A DNA stretch of 64,000 nucleotides, from NCBI GenBank assembly GCA_965240325.2, contig OZ251237.1:1364001-1428000 (forward strand), in the 5' to 3' direction. The notes beneath the pieces were generated by a model. That model worked only from the letters and a program-made list of their open reading frames with translations, was not told where the DNA came from and did no database searches. Positions 9,759 through 28,974 of this stretch are shown here, piece by piece; position 1 is the first letter of the stretch, and the number at the start of each line of letters is the position of its first letter. The translations under genes and the position numbers were made by a program. The DNA comes from Rebecca billardiae RCC1528 (lineage: Eukaryota > Protista > Haptophyta).

Positions 9759-13009
<3,251 letters not shown>

Positions 13010-13278
13010 CGTTCGAAAGCGCCCGCGCTGGGCGAGGCGAGCTGACGGTTGGCCCGTCACGTTGGCACTGCACGAGTGCTGCAACTTGGCGTGCGTCGCG
13101 CGCGCAGCCCACCCGCTGCGGGCCCGGACTTTCAGCCCGCTCCGCGGGCCGCTCGCGTCGCCCGGATTCCTCCTTGCCGCGCGTCCGCCCTCAGACGGTG
13201 GCGGCGGTGCGCACCCCGGCGACGCCCGCGCGCACACACGGCAGGCGCAATCCAAGCGCGCAGGCGGAGGGCGGCGAG

Positions 13279-16072
13279 ATGGAGCTCCTGCCCGCGCGAG
13301 AGACGCCCGAGACGCCCGCCGGCGCCTCCGCGGACGGCGAGTGCGCCGGCGCCGGTGCCGGCACGGCGGCGGCGGCGGAGGCCAACGGCGGCGGCCGCGG
13401 CAGCGAGCAGCTCGTGTCGAAGCTGCTGCTGGAGAACTCGCAGCTGACGAGCACGATCGCGCAGCTCGAGGCGGAGCTGCGCGACATCGACCCCGTCTCC
13501 CGCCGCGCGAGTGCCGACGCGGCCGCGCTCGCCGCCTCCGAGGGCGAGGGCGAGCCGCTCGCGCCCGACGGCGCGCGGCCGCCGCCGCTGAGCGGCTTCG
13601 AGGCGTGGCACCGCCGGCTGCGGGTGGCGCACGGCGCGCTGGCGCGCGCGCGCGAGGGCGAGTCGTGGCTCGAGCGGCTCGAGCGCCAGCGCGCCGGCTG
13701 GGGCCTGCTCGACCGCTTCCGCGAGCGCGAGGCGCGCTCGCGCCACCACGGCTTGGGCGGCTCGGCCGCGGGCGCGGGCGGCGGCGCGGCCGCGGGCGGC
13801 CACCCGCCGGACGAGGCGATGTCGCGGAGCGCGCGCGGGCGGGCGCGCTCGATGGGCGGGCTGCCTGCGCACACGCCGGGCTCCGCCGCGCTCAGCGCCG
13901 CGTGGCGCCGCGCCGCCTCCGCGCGCCGCACGCCCGCCGAGCGCGCCGACTCCGATCGCCACGCCCACGTCGCGCTGGCGCAGGCGCGCGCGTGGTCGCG
14001 CGCGGGCACGGACGACGGCGAGGGCAGCGAGGAGGAGGAGGAGTGGGGCGAGGAGGGGGACGAGGACCTGCCGGCGGTGAGCCTGCCCACATACGAATCG
14101 TGCGCGCGCGCGCGCGCGCCCCGCGCCGCGCGCGACCTCGGCGCGCGAGCGCGCGGACGCAACGGCTGCTGGCTGCCGCGCCGCCGCCGCGCCGCCGCCG
14201 CCGCCTGCCGCCCGACTCCGCCGTGGCGATGTGGGCCTGCGTCGTGCGCGCCGCCCGCTTGGCTCCCGCGCCGCAGGTACGACTACGTGCGGCCCACCTC
14301 GCGGCTGCGCCTCGAGGCGCTCGCGGCCGCGGCGCAGCGCGGGCGCGCCGCGCTCGAGCGCGATGCGGTGCTTGACTCCCTCGTGGCCGGCGTGTTGCTT
14401 CCCTTCCTCGTCGGTGTCGCGGTGGGCACGTCGGCGTACGTGAGCAACGCGCTGACGGACGTGCTGATCGACGTGAAGTGGCGCTGGACCTTCGCGCTGC
14501 TCCACGGCGGGCTGTGGGGCGTCGCCTCCTTCCCCGTCTTCGCCGGCTTCTGCGTCGGCCTGACGTCGCTCTCCGCCGGCATCGCGCTGCTCGCGCCCGC
14601 CGCGTGTGGCTCTGGCATCCCGCATGTGAAGGCGGTGCTCAACGGGATTCGGGTGCCCGGCACGCTGAGCGCGCGGACGCTCGGGGTGAAGCTCGTGGGG
14701 ATCACGCTCGTCGTCGCGTCGGGCGTGCCCGCCGGCCGCGAGGGCCCGATGGTGCAGGTGGGCGCGGGCGTCGGCTCGCTCGCTCTGCAGGTCTATCACG
14801 CAGCGCTCGAGCGCGGCTGGCCGCGGCGCGCGAGCACACAGCTGCGGCTGCTGGACGAGGTGCGTGGCGGGCGGGTGCGCGTGGCGGATGCGCGTGCGTG
14901 GGCGGGGTCGTGCGGCTCGGGGGCGCCTGCTCTGCGCCCCGCCGCCGCCCCGTGCCGCGCCGCGCCCGCGCCCCCCTCCCCCGCCCCGCAGCCCCGCAGC
15001 CGGGGTGGGGCGCGCACGCGCGCGCGCGCTCGCTCGCTGCGAGAGAGACAGCGCGCCACAGCGTGACACAGCGCGCCGCCTGTCTGCCGGCCTCCGCGCC
15101 GCACCCCGGCGCGCGCGCGCGTGGTGGGTCGCTCGCAGGACGACTACAAGCGCGAGTACGTCTCGATGGGCGCGGCGGCGGGCGTCGCGGCCGCGTTCAA
15201 CGCGCCGATCGGCGGCGTCCTGTTTGCGCTGGAGGAGGTGTCGACGCACTGGTGCGCGCGGCTCACGTGGCGCTCCTTCTTCGCAGCCATCATCGCGGCG
15301 GTCACGATGAACTACCTCGTCTCGGGGCGCGAGCGCGGCGTGATCGAGGACGACGCGCTGGTGGTGTTCGGCGCGTTCGACCTCGCCTCCTCCTTCAAGG
15401 TCTCCGAGCTGCCGTACTTCGTGCTCATCGGCGTGGGCGGCGGGCTGCTGGGCGCCGCGTTCAACGCCCTCAACGGGCGCCTCAACCGGTGGCGGCAGCG
15501 CGCGCGCGACAGGCCGGGCGGTCTGCTCGTCGAGCTCGCGGGGGGCTCGGTGCGGCGCGCGAAGGTGGGCGAGGCGGCGTGCCTCGCGCTGCTCGTCGCG
15601 TCGGTCTCCTTCTTCCTCCCGCTCCTCTTCGGCTGCTCCGACGCGGCCGACACCCTCGGCGGCGGCGGCGGCGACCCGCTCGCGCGCGCGGGCGGCCGGC
15701 AGATCCGCGTCGAGTCGTTGCTGGTGAGCGTGCAGTGCACCGCTGAGGGCCAGTACAACGAGATCGCCTCGATCACGCTGTCGAACCAGCACCGCGTGGT
15801 GCGCGCGCTCTTCTCGCGCAACGCGGCCGGCGCGCTCTTCGCGCCGCACTCGCTGCTCGTCTGCCTCCTCCTCTCATTCGCGCTCTCGGTGGTCGTCTAC
15901 GGCGCGGCGATGCCGAGCGGTCTGTTTGTGCCGTGCATGACGATGGGCGCGCTCGGCGGGAGGCTGGTCGGCGAGCTCGTCGCGGCGGGCGCGGCGAGGG
16001 CGGGCGCGGAGGCGGCGGCGGGCGCGGCGGCGGGCGCGGAGGCGGTGCTCGCCGCGATGCCCGCCGACGCGC

Positions 16073-17596: not shown

Positions 17597-20221
17597 ATGC
17601 TGCAGGTCTGGAGTGCCGAGGCTTGGTATGGTATGGGCCGAATAAAAAGGGGCGCGATTCCTGGGGATTCCTGGCGCGTCCCGCCGGTCGACGTAGAACG
17701 TAGAGCCCCGCTGGCCGCGCGTCAGGGCGACGGGACGCGCTGCTGGTCGATGGTATCGACTGCGCCACCCCCAACGCCCCTGCCGCGCGCGCGCCTCGCG
17801 CTGGTGGCATGGATGAACGTGAGCGAGGCGCTCGTGCACACGATGTGTCTCCCATTCGCCCCCTTCATGGTGCAGCACCTCATCGGAGCCGACGACGCGG
17901 ATCCTCGCATCGCGTACCTCCAAGGCTGTCTGGTCGCGGCGGCCAGCCTGGCCGAGTTCGTTGGCAGCTACCCGCTAGGCTTGCTGAGCGACCTGATCGG
18001 CCGGCGGCCGGTCATTCTGCTGGCCTTATTCGCGACCACCATTTGCACGCCGGCGTTTGGCTTCGCCACCTCGTACGAGATGGCTTTTGCTGCCCGCACA
18101 GTGCGCGGGCTGTGCGCGGCCGTCACGGGTACGACCAAGACGTACCTGTACGAGATCACCGACAGCTCGAATCGCGACCGCGCGTTTAGCGTGCTGATGG
18201 CATGCTACGGCTTCGCGCTGTGCATCGGGCCGACCCTCGGCGGCGCGCTCTCCGAGCCTGCCCGCACGTGGCCGTCCACCTTCCCCAATGGCTCTCTCTT
18301 CGACCGCCACCCGTACGCGCTCCCGTGCGTCGTCGTCGCGGCGTGCAGCGGGGCGGCGGGCGTGTGCGCGTGGTTCATGCTCGCCGAGACCGTGCACCGA
18401 CGCTCCCCGTCGATCTGCTGCCTCGACACCCAGCCGCTCTTGGACAAGGGCGCCGCGGACAGCGAGTCTGGCGATGCCTCGAAGCAGTCGGCTCAGGGTG
18501 GGTCTGACGCGAGCGGCAGTGCCGCTGGGCGTGGCGGCAGCAGCGCACTCGGCCGCACCGCCTGGCTGGCCGCGGTGCTGTACGGGATGGTCGCGCTGGT
18601 GGTGGAGATGATACAGGTGCTGTGGGTGCTGTGGGCCAAGCTGCCCCTCGCCCAGCGCGGCCCGCACCTTGACGTGCGCACGATCGGCCTCTTGCAGGCG
18701 GTCGGAGGCGTGGGCATGCTCTTCTCGCAGGCGGTCCTCTACCCGCATGCCGTGCGCGCGTTCGGGCTCAGCCAGACGTTCCGCCTGGGCTGGGTCGGGC
18801 CGGTCGTCGCGTATGTGGCGATCCCCTTCACGGTCCAGCTCGCTCCGCCCGAGGGCGGGTGCTGGCCCTCCCCGTTCTGCGCGTTGCTGGCGGTGCTCGA
18901 GCTGCTGCAGATGGCAAGCAGCTCGGCGCTCTTCACCTGCGTCATCCTGATGCTCTCCAACTCGGTGCCGAGCGGAGAGCTGGGAGCCGCGAACGGAGTG
19001 GGGCAGTCGATCGCGTCCATGGCGCGCTTCGCCGCGCCGCTCTTCAGCGCTACTCTCGTCGGCCAGCTCGCCTCTGGCGCGCCTCCGCTCGACGTGCGGC
19101 TTGCCTTCTTTGCGGTGGCAGCGTTCGCGCTGCTCTCGGTGGCACTCTCGTACGCGCTGCCGCGCTCGATCGACCACGCGTTCGACGGCGCGGCATCGCT
19201 CGCTGGGGCGCCCGCGTCGCGGCGGCCGCACGACCCGAATCGTTTGCCAGCCGCGATCGAGCAGCGCATGATGTGCGCGCCGCTGGGGGCCGCTGACCCC
19301 CATGCCGTCGCGCTCGCGCGTGAGCGGCTCTCGGCGGAAGGGATGGTTGTGATCGACAAGGGCGCCGCGTTCTCCTCAGCGGACGAAGTGCGCGCATGGA
19401 GCGCGGCTCTTTTCTCGGCTGAGTATGACTACACTCGCAGCGGCGCGGCCGCTCGCGACAACCTGGGCGGCGGCGTGCTCGCCACCACCGGCAAGGCCGA
19501 GCGTTCGGCCGTTCAGCTTCTCGAGCACCCCGAGATGAGCTACGAGCGTGAGTACCCTGGGAAGCTGCTCTTTGCGTGCTTCGAGTGTCCGCCCGACAAG
19601 GCGCAGACGACGCTGCTCGAGACCAGCGCTCTGACGCGCGCGCTGCGAGGGACAGCGCTCTGGCACAAGCTCGAGGCGCACGGCCTCACCTACCACTTCA
19701 AGTACTACTCTGCGGACGAGGTCGGTCCAGGCGGCCCGCCGCCAGTCCTGCGCCCGTGGCAGGACTTCTTCGGAGTGCGCACGCGCGCTGAGCTCGAGGC
19801 GGAGCTCGGGCGGCGGCGCATGCGCGCAGAGTGGCTCCAGGGCGAGGCCGGTGTGGTGCGTGTCTCACAGACCCTGCCTGCCTTCGAGCTGGACGACCAG
19901 GGGGACTTGCGTGTGCACTTCACCCTCGCCGTTCACGGCTGCAAGTTCGACCCTGACCCCGCGTGGAAAGGCGTGGCGCACATCGACAGGCCGTATCACT
20001 TCACGCTGGGGGACGGCGCCGAGCTGACGCACGCAGAGCTGGAGCTTGTAAGAGGCATGTACGACACGCACCGCGTGCTGCTGCCGTGGGTGCCCGGCAG
20101 GCTTGTCGTGCTTGACAACCAGCGCTGGATGCACGGCCGTGTCGCTTTTGCACTCGAACCACACGAGACGCGCAAGATCGGCGTCTGCACAGGGGAGAAG
20201 CGCACACGGCGCCTCGTATGA
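17597..20221 (+). CDS. Fusion of an MFS transporter (DHA1/ZIFL-like) with a C-terminal TauD/TfdA-type Fe(II)/2-oxoglutarate dioxygenase; likely start 17750
   Basis: MFS motif A GLLSDLIGRRPV, GPTLGGAL, ELGAANGVGQSIASMARFAAP. With no stop in between, HPEMSY...PGKLLFAC and W.PGRLVVLDNQRWMHGR follow (HxE...H facial triad), about 19320-20221. Confidence 0.85.
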   Translation: MLQVWSAEAWYGMGRIKRGAIPGDSWRVPPVDVERRAPLAARQGDGTRCWSMVSTAPPPTPLPRARLALVAWMNVSEALVHTMCLPFAPFMVQHLIGADDADPRIAYLQGCLVAAASLAEFVGSYPLGLLSDLIGRRPVILLALFATTICTPAFGFATSYEMAFAARTVRGLCAAVTGTTKTYLYEITDSSNRDRAFSVLMACYGFALCIGPTLGGALSEPARTWPSTFPNGSLFDRHPYALPCVVVAACSGAAGVCAWFMLAETVHRRSPSICCLDTQPLLDKGAADSESGDASKQSAQGGSDASGSAAGRGGSSALGRTAWLAAVLYGMVALVVEMIQVLWVLWAKLPLAQRGPHLDVRTIGLLQAVGGVGMLFSQAVLYPHAVRAFGLSQTFRLGWVGPVVAYVAIPFTVQLAPPEGGCWPSPFCALLAVLELLQMASSSALFTCVILMLSNSVPSGELGAANGVGQSIASMARFAAPLFSATLVGQLASGAPPLDVRLAFFAVAAFALLSVALSYALPRSIDHAFDGAASLAGAPASRRPHDPNRLPAAIEQRMMCAPLGAADPHAVALARERLSAEGMVVIDKGAAFSSADEVRAWSAALFSAEYDYTRSGAAARDNLGGGVLATTGKAERSAVQLLEHPEMSYEREYPGKLLFACFECPPDKAQTTLLETSALTRALRGTALWHKLEAHGLTYHFKYYSADEVGPGGPPPVLRPWQDFFGVRTRAELEAELGRRRMRAEWLQGEAGVVRVSQTLPAFELDDQGDLRVHFTLAVHGCKFDPDPAWKGVAHIDRPYHFTLGDGAELTHAELELVRGMYDTHRVLLPWVPGRLVVLDNQRWMHGRVAFALEPHETRKIGVCTGEKRTRRLV

Positions 20222-20347
20222 TTTGTAGCTAGTAGTATATATATGCCTCTGGGATGAGCCCACTAGTAGTGGCTATGAAGCCTGCTATATATAAGACTAA
20301 TTTTACTATTTCAATATATATATATATATATATTATGTGACACTGTA

Positions 20348-20395
20348 ATCTCGCCTGCCTGAGCTGTGTGCGTCTCTTATTCTGAGTAAACTGTA
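20348..20395 (-). repeat. Short dispersed family C fragment (TA-CAGTTTACT...AGACGCACACAGCTCAGGCAGGCGAGAT)
   Basis: Other copies at 1160-1200, 52962-53040 and 53585-53690. Confidence 0.7.
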
Positions 20396-20476: not shown

Positions 20477-22237
20477 TCACCACAGGCTCTGGCCGCCCTC
20501 GATCACGAGGTTGTGTCCCACCATGTACGAGGACGCGTCGGACGCGAGGTACACGACCGCCGCCTGCAAGTCCGTCACCTGCGCTAGCCGCCCGGCCGGG
20601 ATCTGCTCGAGCCAAGTGGCGGCAAGCTTGTTGAGTGCGGGGTTGTCCCAGATCAGGGGGGTGTCCACAATGCCAGGCGAGATGCAGTTGACGTTCAGGC
20701 CGCGCGACGCCCACTCGCACGCGAGAGACTGCGTCAGCTTGACCACGGCCGCCTTGGACGCGTTGTACGCCGCCTGCTTCTGCGGGTGCGGCACGAGCAG
20801 CGACGCCATCGACGCCGTGTTGATGATCTTGCCGCTGCCGCGCGCGAGCATGTGCCGCGCCTCGTGCTGGCAGCAGAGGAAGACGCCGCGTGTGTTGAGC
20901 GCGAACGTGAGGTCCCAGTCGGCGACGGGCGTGTCCTCGGCGGCAGAGTTCTTGTTCACGCCCGCGTTGTTCACCGCGATGTCGAGGGCGCCCTTCCACG
21001 CCACCGCCGCGTCGACCATCGCCTTGACGCTCCCCTCGTCCGCGCAGTCGGCGCGCACCGCCATCGCCTCTGCGCCCTTTGAGACCAGCTCGGCGGCCAC
21101 CGCGTCCGCACGCGCCTGGTCCAGGTCGGCGACGGCGACGGCGGCGCCCGCCTCGGCGAGCGCGTGCGCGAAGGCGCGGCCGATGCCCTGTCCGCCGCCG
21201 GTCACGAGGGCCGTCTTGCCGCTCAGCTTGAGGCGGTCGAGGATGCGCGCGCCCCCCACGCCTCGCGTCACCTCGTCCGGGCCGGCTGCGCCGCTGGGCT
21301 GCGGCGGCGGCGCAGGGGCCGCCGCCGGCACGGGCGCCGCGGCAACCTCGGCGGTGGGCACCGGCGCCGGCGGCGGTGGCGCCGCGCCCTTCAGCCGCAC
21401 GATCGTGATCCCGTCGCGAAGCGGCAGCGTGACGATCTCGACGCGCGCGTCCGCCCTCACCATCTTGTTGAACTCGCGCAGCGCCTCGCCGCCCGCGTTC
21501 CAGCTGTGCGGGTCGTGCGCGGCGCGGCCGAGGTAGGGCACGCCCTTGAAGAGGACGTTGTCGATCACGATCACGCCGCCCGGCGCGAGCAGCCCACGCG
21601 AGAGCACCGTCTCGTAGTACGCCGCGTACGAGCCCTTGTCCGCGTCGATGAACACCATGTCAAGCGGCTGCGCCTGCGGCCACGCGCGCAGCGTCTCGAG
21701 CGCGTCGCCGATGCGCACGCGGATCTTGTGCCCGTGGGGCGACTTGTCGAAGATGGGGCGGGCAAAGGCCTCAAGGAACGGGTCCACCTCGCACGAGATC
21801 ACCTCGCCGTCCTCGGGCAGCGCCTCGGCGATCGTGAGCGCGCCGTAGCCGGTGAACATGCCGACCTCGAGCACGCGCCGGGCCTTGAGCATGTACGCAA
21901 ACATGGCGAGCGTCTTGGCCTCGACGATGTCCGTGGTCCACCGCTCGGAGAAGCGGAACACCGTCTTGCCCTGCGCGTGCAGCTCGTCCCACGGCGCGCC
22001 GCGCGTCTTCCGCTCGAGCTCGGCCGCCTCGGGTGACGGCGCAGACGTGCACTCGACCAGGTACTCGTCCAGGCCACGCGAGAGGCTGGCCGCCTCGTCG
22101 AGCAGGGCGGTGAGCCGCTCGTTGGGCGTGTCAGGCACGAACGCGACCTCCTGCGCGGACGGTGGCGCGGACGACTCCGCTTTCGCCGCAGCGGCGCCGT
22201 GCGCGCGAATGCCCGCGACCGAGCTGGCCTGCTCCAT
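20477..22237 (-). CDS. MT-Ox: Bifunctional O-methyltransferase / NAD-dependent oxidoreductase (MT-Ox, gadusol synthase type): MysB-like MT domain plus classical SDR
   Basis: MT domain: LDEYLVECTS, VLEVGMFTGYGALTIAEALPEDG, CEVDPF, SPHGHKI, DMVFIDADK, IDNVL. Pro/Ala linker. SDR: TGGGQGIG, NNAG, IINTASMASLLVPHPQKQAAYNASK, ending HNLVIEGGQSLW as I recall for fish MT-Ox. Start placed at MEQASS; the ORF extends to 22351. Confidence 0.9.
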   Translation of the reverse strand: MEQASSVAGIRAHGAAAAKAESSAPPSAQEVAFVPDTPNERLTALLDEAASLSRGLDEYLVECTSAPSPEAAELERKTRGAPWDELHAQGKTVFRFSERWTTDIVEAKTLAMFAYMLKARRVLEVGMFTGYGALTIAEALPEDGEVISCEVDPFLEAFARPIFDKSPHGHKIRVRIGDALETLRAWPQAQPLDMVFIDADKGSYAAYYETVLSRGLLAPGGVIVIDNVLFKGVPYLGRAAHDPHSWNAGGEALREFNKMVRADARVEIVTLPLRDGITIVRLKGAAPPPPAPVPTAEVAAAPVPAAAPAPPPQPSGAAGPDEVTRGVGGARILDRLKLSGKTALVTGGGQGIGRAFAHALAEAGAAVAVADLDQARADAVAAELVSKGAEAMAVRADCADEGSVKAMVDAAVAWKGALDIAVNNAGVNKNSAAEDTPVADWDLTFALNTRGVFLCCQHEARHMLARGSGKIINTASMASLLVPHPQKQAAYNASKAAVVKLTQSLACEWASRGLNVNCISPGIVDTPLIWDNPALNKLAATWLEQIPAGRLAQVTDLQAAVVYLASDASSYMVGHNLVIEGGQSLW

Positions 22238-22511
22238 GCCTTTGACTTGATTGCTCGTTGGCCGGCGATCAGCGAATTGATGAGAATGTACCTGATGAAC
22301 CTTCATCAATGTGTGCATCAACGCGTCTGACCTTCCTTTGATTCCGCGCATCCGCTACTTGATCCCTGCATGGGATGAAAAGCGGCGTGGTAATTATAAT
22401 AATAAACCATTCATTAATTAAATACCCCATAGTACGTTGAACGTGTACGGTATTTTCTCCGGACTGTCCATCCCGGGTCGGTGAACGTTCGCGCGATCAC
22501 GGAGGACGAAG
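22238..22511. promoter_or_regulatory. Putative bidirectional promoter between MT-Ox and EEVS
   Basis: About 274-bp divergent intergenic region with an AT-rich core (taattataataataaa, 22391-22420). Confidence 0.5.
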
Positions 22512-23945
22512 ATGGTGGGCCCCGCCACCTTCCAACTTGCCTGCGTGCTCCTTGCCGGCGTGCACTCGCCGCTGCACACCTCCACGCGCGTTACGGCGTT
22601 GCGCGGGCACGCCGACACGCTCGCGTTCTATGACGACGCCTGGCACGCCCACGCCGACCCATCAACCGTGCCGCCGCACGCCGTGCACTCGGCCGCGACG
22701 ATCAAGGAGGACTCGCTGCCGTCCTCCTCCTCGCCCGGGACCTCTACGACCGAGTGGGCCGTGCGCGCGCCGCTCACGTTCGAGTACCGCGTGATCGAAG
22801 CGCCGCGCCTCTTCCACCCCGACAACGACGCCCTGCTCTTCGGCCACCTCGCCCCCGGCTCGGCCGCGCGCGCGCGCGCGCGCGAGCAGCGGCAGCGGCG
22901 GTTGGTTGTGATCGACCAGACCGTCGACGAGCTGTTCGGCGACGGGCTGCGCGCGTACCTCGAGGCTCGGCGCGTGGATCACCAGATTGTCGCACTGCCC
23001 ATGCTCGAGGAGAACAAGGACGTCGACCTCGTTCTCCAGGTCGCCGAGGCGATGAAGCGCTTTGAGCTGGCGAGGCGCGACGAGCCGGTGATCGCGATCG
23101 GCGGCGGCGTCTGCCTCGACGTGGTCGGCCTCGCTGCGACGCTCTTCCGGCGCGGCACGCCGTACATCCGCGTGCCCACGACGACGCTCTCGTACGTCGA
23201 CGCCTCGGTCGGCGCCAAGTCCGGCATCAACTTCATGGGCTCGAAGAACCGGCTGGGCGCGTACGTGCCGCCCGCGGCCGCGCTGCTTGACCCGAGCTTC
23301 CTGCGCACAGAGTCGGCGCGTGGCGTCTCGTCGGGCCTCGCGGAGATGGCGAAGATGGCGCTGGTCAAGTCGCCCGAGCTGTTCGAGCTGCTCGAGGCGC
23401 ACGCCGAGCGCCTCGTCGCGCACCGCTTCCAGCCGCTCTCCGCGCGCGACGGCGTGCCCGGCCGCGTGCTCGGCCTGTCAGTCCGGCTGATGCTGGACGA
23501 GCTGGCGCCCAACCTGTGGGAGGCGTCCCTCGACAGGCTGGTCGACTTTGGGCACGTGCTCGGGCAGGAGCTCGAGCTGCGCACGCTCGGCACGGAGCAC
23601 GAGCTGACGCACGGCGAGTCCGTCGGCGTGGACATGGCGTTCATGACCGTCCTCGCCGCCGTACGCGCGCAGATCAGCGAGGCGCAGCGTGACCGCATCC
23701 TGGCGATGCTGCGCCGCTGCGCCATCCCGGTGTGCAGTGCGATGGTCGACGAGGCGCTCGTGCTCAGCGCGATGGTCGAGCGCCGCGCGCAGAGCATGGG
23801 ACAACGACTGCCACTCCCCGTCGGGGTGGGCAAGGCACGCATCTTCAACGACGTGAGCGAGGACGAGCTGCTTGAGGCACACCGCGTCTGGACCGACCTC
23901 TGCTGCACGCGACCGCCACAGGCGACACCGGCGACGCGCCGTTAG
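22512..23945 (+). CDS. EEVS: Sedoheptulose-7-phosphate cyclase, 2-epi-5-epi-valiolone synthase (EEVS) type, with an N-terminal signal/transit-like extension
   Basis: DHQS-fold motifs AIGGGVCLDVVG, RRGTPYIRVPTT, DASVGAK, KNRLGAY, GLAEMAK, LTHGE. EEVS-type fingerprint MLDELAPNLWE...RLVDFGH, whereas DDGS/MysA reads MLELExPNLHE...RVIAYGH. Confidence 0.9.
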   Translation: MVGPATFQLACVLLAGVHSPLHTSTRVTALRGHADTLAFYDDAWHAHADPSTVPPHAVHSAATIKEDSLPSSSSPGTSTTEWAVRAPLTFEYRVIEAPRLFHPDNDALLFGHLAPGSAARARAREQRQRRLVVIDQTVDELFGDGLRAYLEARRVDHQIVALPMLEENKDVDLVLQVAEAMKRFELARRDEPVIAIGGGVCLDVVGLAATLFRRGTPYIRVPTTTLSYVDASVGAKSGINFMGSKNRLGAYVPPAAALLDPSFLRTESARGVSSGLAEMAKMALVKSPELFELLEAHAERLVAHRFQPLSARDGVPGRVLGLSVRLMLDELAPNLWEASLDRLVDFGHVLGQELELRTLGTEHELTHGESVGVDMAFMTVLAAVRAQISEAQRDRILAMLRRCAIPVCSAMVDEALVLSAMVERRAQSMGQRLPLPVGVGKARIFNDVSEDELLEAHRVWTDLCCTRPPQATPATRR

Positions 23946-24321: not shown

Positions 24322-25317
24322 ATGCTCTACGCTGTCACTGGCGCGAACGGCTTCATCGCCTCCCACGTGGTGAGCAAGCTGGTCGAGCAGGGCCACAAGG
24401 TGCGCGCAACGGTGCGCAAGCCCGACGACGAGGCCAAGCTCGCCCACCTCAAGTCGCTCGGCGCGCCGGTCGAGATCGTCGTGCTCGCCGACCTCACGTC
24501 CGCAGAAGAGGTGGCGCCCGCGCTCAAGGGCTGCGACGGGCTCTTCCACATGGCGGCGGTGCACCCGACGTACGGCTTCGAGGAGACGCCCGAAGGCGCC
24601 GATGCGATCATCGCCCTCGCGGTCGAGGGCACCAAGGCGGTGCTCAAGGCGGCGGCCGCCGCGGGCGTGAAGCGTGTCGTCCTCACGAGCTCACTCGCGG
24701 CCGTCGAGTGTGGCAACGACACGGGCGTGCTGACCGAGGCGACATGGTCAAGGGAGGAGGTGTACAACAGCTCAACATCGACGCAGTGGAAGACGCATCA
24801 CGCGTACGTCAAGTCCAAGACGCTGCAGGAGCGCGCCGCGCTCGCCGCCGCCGCCGAGCTCGGGCTCGACCTGCGCGTGATCGCGCCGGGCAACCTATGC
24901 ATCGGGCCAATCCTCAGTACACACATCAACGGCACGATGACGCGCGTGCGCGACGTGGTGCAGGGCTCAAACACGCTGAAGGGCTGCGCAGACCTCGGTG
25001 TAGTCCACGTCTCCGACGTCGCGCACGCGCATGTCGCCGCGATGACCACCGACTCCGCAAGCGGCCGTTACATCGTCGCGCAGAGCATGGTGCGGCTGGA
25101 GGACGTGTTCAGTGCGCTCAAGGAGCTCTGCCCGGACCGGCCGGTGGCGCCGATGACGAACATGGACTACGCGTCGGGCACGCCGGGCAAGGCGCGCGCG
25201 ATTGAGAGCCGCACCGAGGCTGAGCTGGGCGTGCAGTACGTGCCACTCAAGCAGACGCTCAAGGAGGCGGTCGACTCGATGGTCAGCAAGGGCTTCATCC
25301 AGGCCGCCGCCGCGTGA
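24322..25317 (+). CDS. Extended SDR: NAD(P)-dependent reductase/epimerase, dihydroflavonol-reductase / cinnamoyl-CoA-reductase-like
   Basis: VTGANGFIASHVV, VRATVR, FHMAA, KRVVLTSSLAAV, catalytic YVKSK, VHVSDVAHAHV, GRYIV. Confidence 0.88.
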   Translation: MLYAVTGANGFIASHVVSKLVEQGHKVRATVRKPDDEAKLAHLKSLGAPVEIVVLADLTSAEEVAPALKGCDGLFHMAAVHPTYGFEETPEGADAIIALAVEGTKAVLKAAAAAGVKRVVLTSSLAAVECGNDTGVLTEATWSREEVYNSSTSTQWKTHHAYVKSKTLQERAALAAAAELGLDLRVIAPGNLCIGPILSTHINGTMTRVRDVVQGSNTLKGCADLGVVHVSDVAHAHVAAMTTDSASGRYIVAQSMVRLEDVFSALKELCPDRPVAPMTNMDYASGTPGKARAIESRTEAELGVQYVPLKQTLKEAVDSMVSKGFIQAAAA

Positions 25318-26118: not shown

Positions 26119-27600
26119 TCAGTCGCCGTTCTCCTCCGTCATCTTGCCGATGCACAGGTCGACCTTCGCCCAGCGGTTGCCCGACCACACGTTGCGTGCG
26201 AGCAACACGGGCACGTGTACGCAGTGCTGCGCGATGAATGGCAGCGGGTCAGCAGCGTCCCAGTACGCGTCCTTCTTGCTTGCCAAGATGTGCAGCGCTG
26301 CGCGCGCGCGCTCGAGCACCGAGAGCCCGCGCGGCGCGAGCACCTCGTAGTACAGATCGGCCAGCGTCCAGTTCACCTCCTCCGCGGCCGGCACCGGCTG
26401 CACCGCGTCCGCGGGCGCGTCCGCGTTGGCCGCCATCGCGCTCGGTTCCGCGAGCAGCGCGCGGCCAAAGTCGGCCATGTTGCGGTGGTACGAGGTGACG
26501 TTGGACGAGAGCCGTGGGTTGCACTCGATCGCGCGCGCCACGCCGTCCTCGCCGACGAAGAAGTCGATGCAGACGATGCCGCTCAGCTTGTACGTGCGCA
26601 CGAAAGCGCTCACCCAGTTGAGGATGGCCGAGTTGCCCGCGTGCGTGTAGTTGAAGCACGAGATTGAAGCCTGGTTGTCCGTGAAGGTGAGCACGCGCCC
26701 GTCAGTGCACAGCGCGCACGAGGAGTACTCGACGCCCTCGAGCACCCCCTGCACGAGCCACGGCGCCTCCGCGCTCACGGCGAGCCCCGAGACGTACGCG
26801 CGCAGCTGTTGCTCCGCACACGGCAGCTGGAAGAGGTCGAGCCTGCGCATCGGGTCGTAGTTGCACGACTTGAGCAGGTAGCGCTTGGGCGAGTGGCGCG
26901 GGAGAGCGGCGTTGAACGCGAGGATCTCGTCCATCGAGCGCATCCGCTGCGTGTCCGGCATGGGCAGCCCCGCCTCCTTCGCCTTCCGCGCGAACACGAC
27001 CTTGTCGTCGAGCGCGAGCACGTCCTGCTCACAGAGCGACCAGCTGCGCACGCCCGGCGGGAGGCGCGAAAAGGCGCGCGCCTCGTACCGGCTGGCGGAG
27101 GGCGAGGTGACCGGCACGACGAGACTTGCGCCCTCGCGCTCGACCAGCTCGCGGATCGCGCGCTCGAACGCCTCGGACTGCTGCTCGGGGACAGGCACCG
27201 TCACAAACCTGTCCACGTGCATGGAGAAGCGCGACGCCACCATCCAGTACTTGCGCGTCTCGACGAGGATGACGCGGCAGCCCGCGGCGCGGAGCGCGCG
27301 GCACATGACGAGCGACTTGGTCATCTTACCGCCCGTCACGATCGCCGTCTTGCCGTTGAGCGCCAGCGGGCGCTTGCGGGCGCGCGTGCGCAGCCACTCG
27401 AGCGCCGCGCCGACGATCGCAGCCGTCACGACAAGGGGCGCGAGCATGGCGAGGCAGCCGAGGCAGAGCAGAGACCACGCGCGGGGCTCAATCATGTCGC
27501 GCAGGGAGCGCGCATGCGTTGCCACCGGCGAAGCCTCGCCCTGCTGCGCGCGCAGCGCATCCCCGACTCCGCGCGGCTCGACTGTGCAGGGCAGGCACAT
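26119..27600 (-). CDS. mysC: ATP-grasp ligase MysC (mycosporine-glycine synthase type); start 27600 or 27495
   Basis: N-terminal hydrophobic segment, TGGKMTKS...GCRVILVETRKYW...RFS..VDRFVTVP, PVTSP, LDDK..F, YLLKS..YD..RRLDL..LP, AIECNPR, DPLPF, and C-terminal W.KVDLCIGKMTEENGD, all typical of cyanobacterial MysC. Confidence 0.92.
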   Translation of the reverse strand: MCLPCTVEPRGVGDALRAQQGEASPVATHARSLRDMIEPRAWSLLCLGCLAMLAPLVVTAAIVGAALEWLRTRARKRPLALNGKTAIVTGGKMTKSLVMCRALRAAGCRVILVETRKYWMVASRFSMHVDRFVTVPVPEQQSEAFERAIRELVEREGASLVVPVTSPSASRYEARAFSRLPPGVRSWSLCEQDVLALDDKVVFARKAKEAGLPMPDTQRMRSMDEILAFNAALPRHSPKRYLLKSCNYDPMRRLDLFQLPCAEQQLRAYVSGLAVSAEAPWLVQGVLEGVEYSSCALCTDGRVLTFTDNQASISCFNYTHAGNSAILNWVSAFVRTYKLSGIVCIDFFVGEDGVARAIECNPRLSSNVTSYHRNMADFGRALLAEPSAMAANADAPADAVQPVPAAEEVNWTLADLYYEVLAPRGLSVLERARAALHILASKKDAYWDAADPLPFIAQHCVHVPVLLARNVWSGNRWAKVDLCIGKMTEENGD

Positions 27601-27831
27601 CGTCGTCAGAATCGTCGGGAGACTTCGAGAATACTACTACAGTCTTACTACTAGGAATCATCTATCGATCGATATGAGGAATCCGAGCGCGCGGGAAAAG
27701 CTGGTACAAACGCGCGGATTCTCACGTCCTCGAGTCGCCCCGTGCCGTCCGGACAGGCCAGGGGAGAGACCGAGAGAGGGAGGACCACCCCAGTTCTCCA
27801 GGATCGTGATCCTTCCGCGCCGTGCGCGACG

Positions 27832-28974
27832 ATGCCAGCTGCCGAGGACAAGATGCGCGTGGTGCATCTGATGGGCTCCGCCGTGTCGGCGTACTACGAG
27901 AGCCTGAGCACATTCTACGCGCAGGGCTGCGTCGACGGCGCGCAGGACGAGCTGACACGCGCCCACTTTGACTTTGCGTTTGCGATCGTGCACGCGACCG
28001 CGGATGGGCCGCGCTGGTCGTTCCCAGCCGAGCTCTCCGAGAAGGCGATCGCGGCCGCGCCGCGTCTGACGCACGCGGAGGGTGTCCAATGCCTTGCCGC
28101 GATCGACGCCGACGTGTGCGTGCCGCACATGTTCTGCTACCCCGGCATGACCACCTATCGCGCCCTGCTCGACATGCTGGGCGTGCCGATCCTGGGTTGC
28201 CCGCCGGCGTGCATGGCGCTGGCGACGGACAAGTTCCAGACGCGCGCGGTGGTCGCGGCGGCGGGCGTGCGCGTGCCAACGGGCGAGCTCCTCCGCGCGG
28301 GCGAGCGCCCCAGCCTCGCGCTTCCCTTCGTGCTCAAGCCGTGCCGCGAGGACAATTCTATGGGCGTCTCGGTCGTGCGCCGGCCAGAGGAGCTCGACGC
28401 GGCGCTCGCCGAGGCGTTCCGCTTCGACGAGCGCGTGGTGTGCGAGCAGTTTGTGCCACCCGGCCGCGAGATCCGCTGCGCCGTGATCGAGGACGAGCAC
28501 GGCGAGCCCACGCGCGTGCTGCCGTGCCTCGAGTACTTTCTGAGCGAGGAGCACCCGATCCGCACGCCAGGGGACAAGCTGGCGAGCAGCGAGGACGGCA
28601 AGGTGACGGGGCTCGCGTCCGGAGCGCGCAAGTGCCCGGCGGAGCTGTCGGACGAGCTGCGCGCCAAGCTCGCGGATGCCACGATCCGCTCCCACCGCGC
28701 ACTGGGCTGTCGCGACTTCTCGCTCTTCGACTTCCGCGTCGACCCGGAGGGTGAGGTGTTTTTTCTCGAGGCGTGCCCGGTGTGCTCCTTCTCGCCAAAG
28801 AGCGTGATCGTCTCGCTGGCGGACGCGGCGGCCGACGCGGATGTGGCGCACCCGGCGCTCTTCCACACGCTGCTCCGCCGGGCAGCTGGACGAGGCCAGA
28901 AGGCCAAGCCCAAGGCCAAGCCAGACGAAAAGCCAGTGCAGGTCTTTGGCATGCATGCAGACTGTGCGCGGTAG
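27832..28974 (+). CDS. mysD: D-Ala-D-Ala-ligase-like MAA ligase MysD (shinorine/porphyra-334 synthase type)
   Basis: RVVHLMGSA...YESLS.FYAQGC, W.FP..LS, VPHMFCYPGMTTYRALLDMLGVP, AAAGVRVP.GELLR, KP..EDNSMGVS, GREIRC, ALGCRDFSLFDFRVDPEG..FFLEA, FSPKSVI. Confidence 0.92.
   Translation: MPAAEDKMRVVHLMGSAVSAYYESLSTFYAQGCVDGAQDELTRAHFDFAFAIVHATADGPRWSFPAELSEKAIAAAPRLTHAEGVQCLAAIDADVCVPHMFCYPGMTTYRALLDMLGVPILGCPPACMALATDKFQTRAVVAAAGVRVPTGELLRAGERPSLALPFVLKPCREDNSMGVSVVRRPEELDAALAEAFRFDERVVCEQFVPPGREIRCAVIEDEHGEPTRVLPCLEYFLSEEHPIRTPGDKLASSEDGKVTGLASGARKCPAELSDELRAKLADATIRSHRALGCRDFSLFDFRVDPEGEVFFLEACPVCSFSPKSVIVSLADAAADADVAHPALFHTLLRRAAGRGQKAKPKAKPDEKPVQVFGMHADCAR

Follow-up and report, generated by a model that had tools for sequence, protein, structure and literature searches.

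The 64,000-nucleotide stretch of contig OZ251237.1 analyzed here (positions 1,364,001 to 1,428,000, Rebecca billardiae RCC1528; hereafter the window) carries, within a mycosporine-type gene cluster, a divergent gene pair which very probably represents the algal counterpart of the two-gene gadusol cassette of vertebrates, with the pathway and history proposed below. The pair consists of MT-Ox (20477–22351, minus strand), which encodes a fused methyltransferase-oxidoreductase, and a gene for an EEVS-type sedoheptulose-7-phosphate cyclase (22512–23945, plus strand). To our knowledge, vertebrates have no documented sunscreen of their own making other than gadusol and melanin, and among proposed gene transfers from algae to animals the gadusol genes are a textbook candidate. 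The locus adds a second pelagophyte-type example of the pair, which is here linked to wider sampling.

The MT-Ox fusion gene

The MT-Ox gene is a single uninterrupted open reading frame (ORF) of 624 aa which is free of stops and encodes, in this order, a MysB-type O-methyltransferase (OMT; Pfam Methyltransf_3, aa 139–319, E 2e-44), a Pro/Ala-rich linker and a classical SDR (adh_short_C2/adh_short, aa 379–621, E 4e-59). An earlier interpretation of the bare DNA letters, referred to below as the sequence-only reading, had described just such an ORF, including the C-terminal string that is indeed found in the translation, and its MysB label for the methyltransferase (MT) domain is backed by the MT clade with support 98 that is described below. 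The true start is probably Met39, at position 22237, because a 586-aa gene call that is 100% identical to MT-Ox begins at this residue and because alignments with homologues begin near it.

The MT-Ox protein of the window is 72% identical to that of Aureococcus (AURANDRAFT_30097), 61–64% identical to peptides deduced from transcriptomes of two haptophytes, Calcidiscus and Coccolithus, which are likewise full-length fusions, and 54–56% identical to fish zgc:113054 over 87–90% of its length (56% over 87% for Danio). All of these proteins have their Pfam domains in the same order. In an alignment of 17 fused proteins, including those of zebrafish and Pycnococcus, the SDR motifs TGxxxGxG and NNAG and the Ser-Tyr-Lys residues are invariant, as are the OMT motifs DADK and DN for S-adenosylmethionine and metal. 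The best stand-alone SDR of solved structure reaches 172 bits, compared to ~606 bits for the whole fish MT-Ox, and the E-values between the window pair and its named relatives are 1e-170 or lower, which excludes chance similarity.

Downstream of MT-Ox, three independent Logan contigs (L011–L013), which cannot be assigned to RNA or DNA, share a common end 108 nt past the MT-Ox stop and just beyond an AATAAG motif, while a (TA)n microsatellite lies ~35 nt beyond this shared end (region ~20310–20369). The shared end is a possible candidate for a poly(A) site.

The cyclase is of the EEVS type

The second gene of the pair encodes a protein of 477 aa with an N-terminal extension of ~80 aa and with the Pfam N and C domains of DHQ_synthase (DHQ_synthase and DHQS_C), in agreement with the two-domain fold of DHQS-like enzymes, which has sites for NAD and metal. 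Residues 63–454 align end to end with ValA (4p53), the reference EEVS, against which the protein scores 286 bits, compared to 189 bits against Anabaena DDGS (5tpr) and at most 131 bits against DHQS, and it is below all NCBIfam aroB cut-offs. The residues that discriminate the two cyclase types are Leu267, Asp281 and His360 in ValA versus Glu254, Ala268 and Thr347 in DDGS, and mutagenesis at the Leu267 and Asp281 sites has been reported to matter (PMC10666671). These three sites, out of a 14-site fingerprint, were checked in the window cyclase, and its L331 and D345 are the EEVS-type residues that correspond to ValA Leu267 and Asp281; the third site is taken up where alternative explanations are weighed. 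Among 137 cyclases, the Leu267 site is Leu in all but two, which have Ile, and the Asp281 site is Asp in every one. As judged from these scores and residues, the window cyclase is of the EEVS type and not of the DDGS type.

Of note, EEVS-type cyclases also occur in several other architectures. Many distant metagenome representatives of ~730–765 aa, e.g., P0257, P0261 and P0279, are fused to a ROK-family sugar kinase, while P0245 is a multi-domain protein of 2653 aa and in P0250 the fusion partner is an AMP-binding adenylation domain. P0163, P0154 and P0244 possess an N-terminal Methyltransf_3 domain fused to the cyclase, without an SDR; they have the EEVS-type Leu and Asp, and in the EEVS tree they belong to the dinoflagellate-like and haptophyte-like clades. 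The classic dinoflagellate OMT-'DHQS' fusions may therefore be EEVS and not DDGS enzymes. It was also considered whether the nearest relative of the window cyclase is bacterial, as metagenome contig L010 (1–11799) encodes an EEVS 63% identical to it beside a bacterial-looking carotenoid operon. This candidate was rejected, since beyond aa 434 the protein no longer follows the members of its cluster, which are otherwise 99.8% identical, and the GC content falls from 0.60 to ~0.52 at that point, so that the contig is probably a chimeric assembly in which an algal-type EEVS has been joined to the operon.

Divergent gene order

The two genes are transcribed divergently, and their starts are separated by 160 bp if MT-Ox begins at its first ATG (22351) and by 274 bp if it begins at Met39, in line with the head-to-head arrangement noted in the sequence-only reading. 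The intergenic region at 22238–22511 is locally AT-rich and is presumed to be a shared, bidirectional promoter region. The same head-to-head order of EEVS and MT-Ox was observed in Aureococcus (L001), in Pycnococcus (L009), in three haptophyte-like contig families (L002/3, L005, L007 and a 54-kb contig), and in zebrafish (L006), in which the two starts are ~1.6 kb apart. Accordingly, the earlier description of the pair as vertebrate-type is upheld by the order of MT domain, linker and SDR, by the end-to-end alignment with fish zgc:113054, by the gene order shared with zebrafish, by the common clade of the fused SDR domains from fish and algae, and by the position of the cyclase in one clade with fish EEVS (see below).

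On a TARA metagenome scaffold (L004, 1–4582), the 3 kb upstream of a haptophyte-like MT-Ox gene contain no cyclase, which indicates that the pair is unlinked in some lineages. The GC content of the window is ~0.60–0.86 in 2-kb bins and 0.68 overall, and the ORFs are long and intron-free; at 10001–14000 the GC content reaches 0.82–0.86 over 4 kb, far above the mean of the window.

Phylogeny of the pair and its relationship to the vertebrate genes

The EEVS tree was inferred with IQ-TREE from 47 EEVS domains. Most of the algal sequences in this study are environmental assemblies and the vertebrates are represented by fish only, the fish EEVS representatives being 73–76% identical to a zebrafish EEVS exon, while the labels 'haptophyte-like', 'pelagophyte-like' and 'dinoflagellate-like' rest on Calcidiscus, Coccolithus, Aureococcus and Pyrodinium as anchors. 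Fish and chromist-algal EEVS form one clade (support 100/99) which holds the window cyclase, and within this clade fish are sister to the 23 algal rows (94/85). These 23 rows divide into a haptophyte-like group and a group composed of the pelagophyte-like clade, with the window and Aureococcus, and the dinoflagellate-like clade. The green algae (Pycnococcus and Trebouxia) and a chytrid form a separate EEVS clade (97/99) outside that of fish and chromists; the chytrid sequence, P0310 from Thoreauomyces humboldtii, is nested in this green-algal clade.

Alternative placements of the fish EEVS were compared by the approximately unbiased (AU) test, for which the groups were named after the first tree had been seen, so that the tests are somewhat weakened. 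A tree in which fish nest within the chromist group and haptophytes fall outside it was not rejected (p-AU 0.148), while fish as sister to the pelagophyte-like clade (p-AU 0.0004) and all algae as a clade without fish (p-AU 0.0002) were both rejected. The full-length MT-Ox tree, rooted on the one long green-algal branch of Pycnococcus, is congruent with the EEVS tree in placing fish beside the haptophyte-like and pelagophyte-like groups, and the trees of the separate MT and SDR domains agree with each other and match the order of the full-length tree.

With regard to the fusion itself, the SDR domains of the fused proteins from fish, pelagophyte-like and haptophyte-like algae and Pycnococcus form one clade (support 97) relative to stand-alone SDRs, the latter being outgroups from metagenome contigs which are 51–55% identical to the SDR half of MT-Ox and which, having been picked up through generic SDR motifs in a survey for MT-Ox neighbors, were not usable for synteny. 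In the MT tree, the MT domains of MT-Ox, the MysB proteins of mysABCD loci from Nostoc and Actinomycetota, and the MT domains of MT-EEVS fusions make up a clade with support 98. The MT domain of MT-Ox is 44–49% identical to bacterial MysB (48–49% to that of Nostoc), and the best bacterial matches to it are free-standing MysB proteins encoded in canonical mysA-mysB-mysC-mysD loci of Nostoc and of an Actinomycetota metagenome-assembled genome. In a GTDB scan with a single genome for each bacterial or archaeal species, both domains were covered in none of the 80 best-scoring loci. A giant-virus vector for the pair was likewise considered and rejected, the scan of viral contigs having returned just three weak partial OMT matches and no relative.

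Taken together, a single MT-SDR fusion appears well supported by the SDR half, the shared architecture and the shared gene order, but not by the MT half alone. The grouping of the vertebrate pair with the chromist-algal pair is consistent with an algal donor, and on the evidence of the EEVS tests such a donor would not have belonged to the pelagophyte-like clade as sampled in this study. The vertebrate genes are nearest to the chromist-algal group and share even the divergent gene order with the algae.

Neighboring genes form a mycosporine-type cluster

The genes for the MysB-type MT domain and for the MysC-like and MysD-like proteins are all located in one 8.5-kb part of the window. Measured against a canonical mys cluster, the MysB, MysC and MysD types are found clustered here, while the cyclase is of the EEVS type in place of a DDGS-type MysA. 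Downstream of the cyclase, the first gene encodes an extended-SDR reductase of the Epimerase/NmrA/3Beta_HSD type (24322–25317, plus strand; Pfam Epimerase, E 9e-22), a homologue of which, 54% identical, is present in the haptophyte-like locus L002/3, and the gene calls for the 54-kb contig include a similar one. It is followed by a MysC-like ATP-grasp ligase gene (26119–27600, minus strand; NCBIfam PRK06849, weak ATP-grasp_3), whose product is 34% identical to MysC of the Nostoc mysABCD loci and 48–51% identical to the products of genes adjoining MT-Ox in L002/3 and L007, and by a gene for a MysD-like enzyme of the D-Ala-D-Ala-ligase type (27742–28974, plus strand; Dala_Dala_lig_C, E 1e-23), the likely start of which is ATG 27832 or 27853. 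The MysD-like protein is 44–45% identical to Nostoc MysD, 51% to its L002/3 homologue and 38.5% to a Pycnococcus fusion protein. On the other side of the pair, an ORF of 874 aa (17597–20221, plus strand) combines an MFS transporter domain (Pfam MFS_1, aa ~79–520) with a TauD-type dioxygenase domain (aa 631–864); it could equally be one gene or two genes read through in GC-rich DNA.

The sequence-only reading had suggested a survey of algal EEVS/MT-Ox loci for such neighbors, and these were indeed encountered in several of them. The haptophyte-like locus L002/3 carries homologues of EEVS, MT-Ox, the reductase, MysC and MysD, together with an MFS gene, within 17 kb and with 50–61% identity to the window genes; on this contig, MysD is fused to Oxidored_FMN (old yellow enzyme) in a protein of 768 aa (L002:428–2734, minus strand). 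In L007, MysC comes after MT-Ox. In Pycnococcus provasolii, an 870-aa MysC-MysD fusion (L009:11878–14490, minus strand) adjoins EEVS, and an MFS gene is located on the opposite side of the pair. The MFS genes that flank MT-Ox in Pycnococcus and occur in L002/3 show little or no sequence similarity to the MFS domain of the window.

The recurrence of MysC/MysD-like neighbors in haptophyte-like contigs and in Pycnococcus suggests that the cluster is old among algae. That the ligase neighbors have one origin across all algae is not established, however, because the window proteins are nearer to those of Nostoc (34% for MysC and 44–45% for MysD) than to the Pycnococcus fusion (27% and 38.5%).

Proposed pathway and alternative explanations

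From homology, domain architecture, diagnostic residues, gene order and tree positions, the enzyme activities, end product and co-regulation are predicted as follows. The cyclase would convert sedoheptulose 7-phosphate to 2-epi-5-epi-valiolone (hereafter EEV), which, by analogy with the zebrafish proteins, would be oxidized by the NAD-dependent SDR domain of MT-Ox and O-methylated by its MysB-type domain to yield gadusol, both genes presumably being transcribed outward from the one short spacer that they share. Gadusol is probably an intermediate in this alga, to which the MysC-like and MysD-like ligases would add amino acids to give gadusol-core mycosporine-like compounds, with the nearby reductase and transporter possibly serving in tailoring and export. 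As to its history, the MT-SDR fusion would have arisen once, its MT half going back to the MysB family, whose bacterial members are encoded in mysABCD clusters, and the fused gene would be common to green algae, chromist algae and vertebrates, the vertebrate copies being nearest to the chromist-algal group and outside the pelagophyte-like clade. Since the pair is associated with MysC/MysD ligases in several algal lineages, abundant phytoplankton of the ocean is predicted to make natural mycosporines based on gadusol, which is open to testing by chemistry. It is possible, albeit doubtful, that chromist picophytoplankton (pelagophyte-like and haptophyte-like) share a cluster of about six genes (EEVS, MT-Ox, MysC, MysD, Epimerase-type reductase and transporter) for an undescribed gadusol-core mycosporine, and that the vertebrate cassette with its divergent layout is a fragment of such a cluster which was acquired, prior to the pelagophyte/dinoflagellate split, from a stem alga of the chromist type.

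Several observations weigh against this pathway and history, of which the first concerns the cyclase. It has Gln427 where ValA has His360, and members of the chromist-algal clade have Q, L, F or N at this site, the sole exception being P0246, a metagenome sequence with His; because the residue is replaced in the window and in its algal relatives, the product of the cyclase could differ. There is thus a small chance that the cyclase is not a true EEVS and that the exchange shifts its product (e.g., to 2-epi-valiolone or a deoxygadusol-type core), in which case the cluster would make ordinary mycosporine-like amino acids (MAAs) or another cyclitol instead of gadusol. Such a shift would fit the presence of mys-type ligases beside the cyclase and the distribution of the residue, which is His in ~100 of the 137 EEVS-type cyclases, being kept by fish and nearly all representatives, including Vibrio, outside the chromist clade and the green-algal/chytrid clade (L, Q, S, G or A), and which is Thr in DDGS (PMC10666671). 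However, L331 and D345, at the two sites with a reported mutagenesis effect, are of the EEVS type (PMC10666671), the ValA score of the cyclase (286 bits) exceeds that for DDGS (189 bits), and MT-Ox retains an oxidoreductase domain, which is required only on the EEV route. The ligase genes invite a different objection, as the MysC-like protein lies under the NCBIfam cut-off (PRK06849, 229 bits) and as no MysC, MysD or reductase homologue is found within 10 kb of the pair in Aureococcus, the nearest named relative. We consider it unlikely, though somewhat less so than a shifted cyclase product, that gadusol is the end product as in fish and that the MysC/MysD-like genes nearby serve an unrelated pathway or joined the pair recently and in this lineage only; the solitary Aureococcus pair, the L004 scaffold, on which MT-Ox lacks the other cluster genes nearby, and the low similarity of the window ligases to the Pycnococcus fusion as compared to Nostoc would all agree with it. 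Against this stand the same gene set within 17 kb in L002/3, the position of MysC after MT-Ox in L007, the MysC-MysD fusion that abuts EEVS in Pycnococcus, and the published green-algal neighborhood (PMC7826186). The sequence-only reading had left a choice between a fuller ancestral cluster, from which vertebrates kept two genes, and a later recruitment: the recurring neighbors lend weight to the former among algae, but the gene content of the vertebrate donor cannot be read from the window locus, because fish fall outside the pelagophyte-like clade and Aureococcus is devoid of such neighbors.

The proposed history has its own contrary evidence, in that the monophyly of the fused MT domains was not recovered, although it was not rejected either (p-AU 0.14); the SDR half, by contrast, bears out the anticipated grouping with vertebrate MT-Ox. 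It is highly improbable, in our estimation, that algae and vertebrates took the pair separately from an unsampled bacterium or virus, or that the fusion arose twice, in which case the animal genes would not come from algae. Fish EEVS stand beside, and not clearly within, the chromist-algal group (94/85), the outgroup-rooted SDR tree weakly supports (88) a position of fish external to all algae, and fish keep the bacterial-type His360 while algae do not, all of which would speak for such a history. Conversely, none of the 80 best bacterial and archaeal loci covers both domains, no viral contig has a relative, the fused SDR domains are monophyletic (97), fish and algae do not differ in architecture or in the divergent order with EEVS, and the EEVS data reject a grouping of all algae without fish (p 0.0002). 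We therefore retain a gadusol pair of shared ancestry, embedded in a mycosporine-type cluster, as by far the most probable interpretation of the locus.

Comparison with known systems

It has previously been demonstrated that zebrafish EEVS and MT-Ox make gadusol, and in the same study adjacent genes for EEVS and MT-Ox were reported from Aureococcus and Coccomyxa and algae were proposed as the source (Osborn et al. 2015, PMC4426668). The adjacency and the algal-donor proposal that the sequence-only reading had cited as established are thus as published, and because this work raised the origin of animal gadusol for Aureococcus and Coccomyxa, the window locus does not open that question. A green-algal neighborhood of EEVS, MT-Ox, MysC-like and OMT genes has likewise been described as a natural hybrid pathway and tied to gadusol-core MAAs, e.g., prasiolin and klebsormidins (Foflonker and Blaby-Haas 2020, PMC7826186). 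The present analysis contributes modest added detail to this picture, namely the extended chromist cluster with MysD and reductase, the divergent order down to zebrafish, the variation at the His360 site and the AU tests; our literature searches, which did not cover Osborn 2017, a work that may hold part of this, returned no description of these added features for pelagophytes or haptophytes.

The zebrafish cassette (EEVS, LOC100003999; MT-Ox, zgc:113054) resembles the window in its two head-to-head genes, its EEVS-type cyclase and its Methyltransf_3 and SDR domains in one chain, but the window genes are intronless, have Gln at the His360 site where fish keep His, and stand amid MysC/MysD-like and other genes, none of which is present in the zebrafish locus examined. 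The Aureococcus anophagefferens pair (AURANDRAFT_30097 and its neighbor) comes from the nearest relative with a name, as judged by either gene, and is divergent as in the window; its EEVS is 58.5% identical to the window cyclase and has Leu in place of Gln at the His360 site, and the MysC, MysD and reductase neighbors of the window have no counterpart there within 10 kb.

The green-algal neighborhood of Klebsormidium nitens, Chromochloris zofingiensis and Coccomyxa subellipsoidea shares with the window EEVS, MT-Ox and a MysC-like ATP-grasp ligase, as well as gadusol-core MAAs as the proposed products. It differs in possessing an extra O-methyltransferase and no MysD, while the window has MysD, the Epimerase-type reductase and the MFS/TauD ORF, and the green-algal EEVS branch outside the clade of fish and chromists. 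The Nostoc mysABCD loci (L014, L015) follow the same substrate logic from sedoheptulose 7-phosphate, with 48–49% (MT), 44–45% (MysD) and 34% (MysC) identity to the window proteins, but their cyclase is of the DDGS type and 33% identical to that of the window, and bacterial MysB is free-standing where that of the window is fused to an SDR. The window locus is therefore a further example of the kind described in algae since 2015 and 2020, and it does not overturn the published picture.

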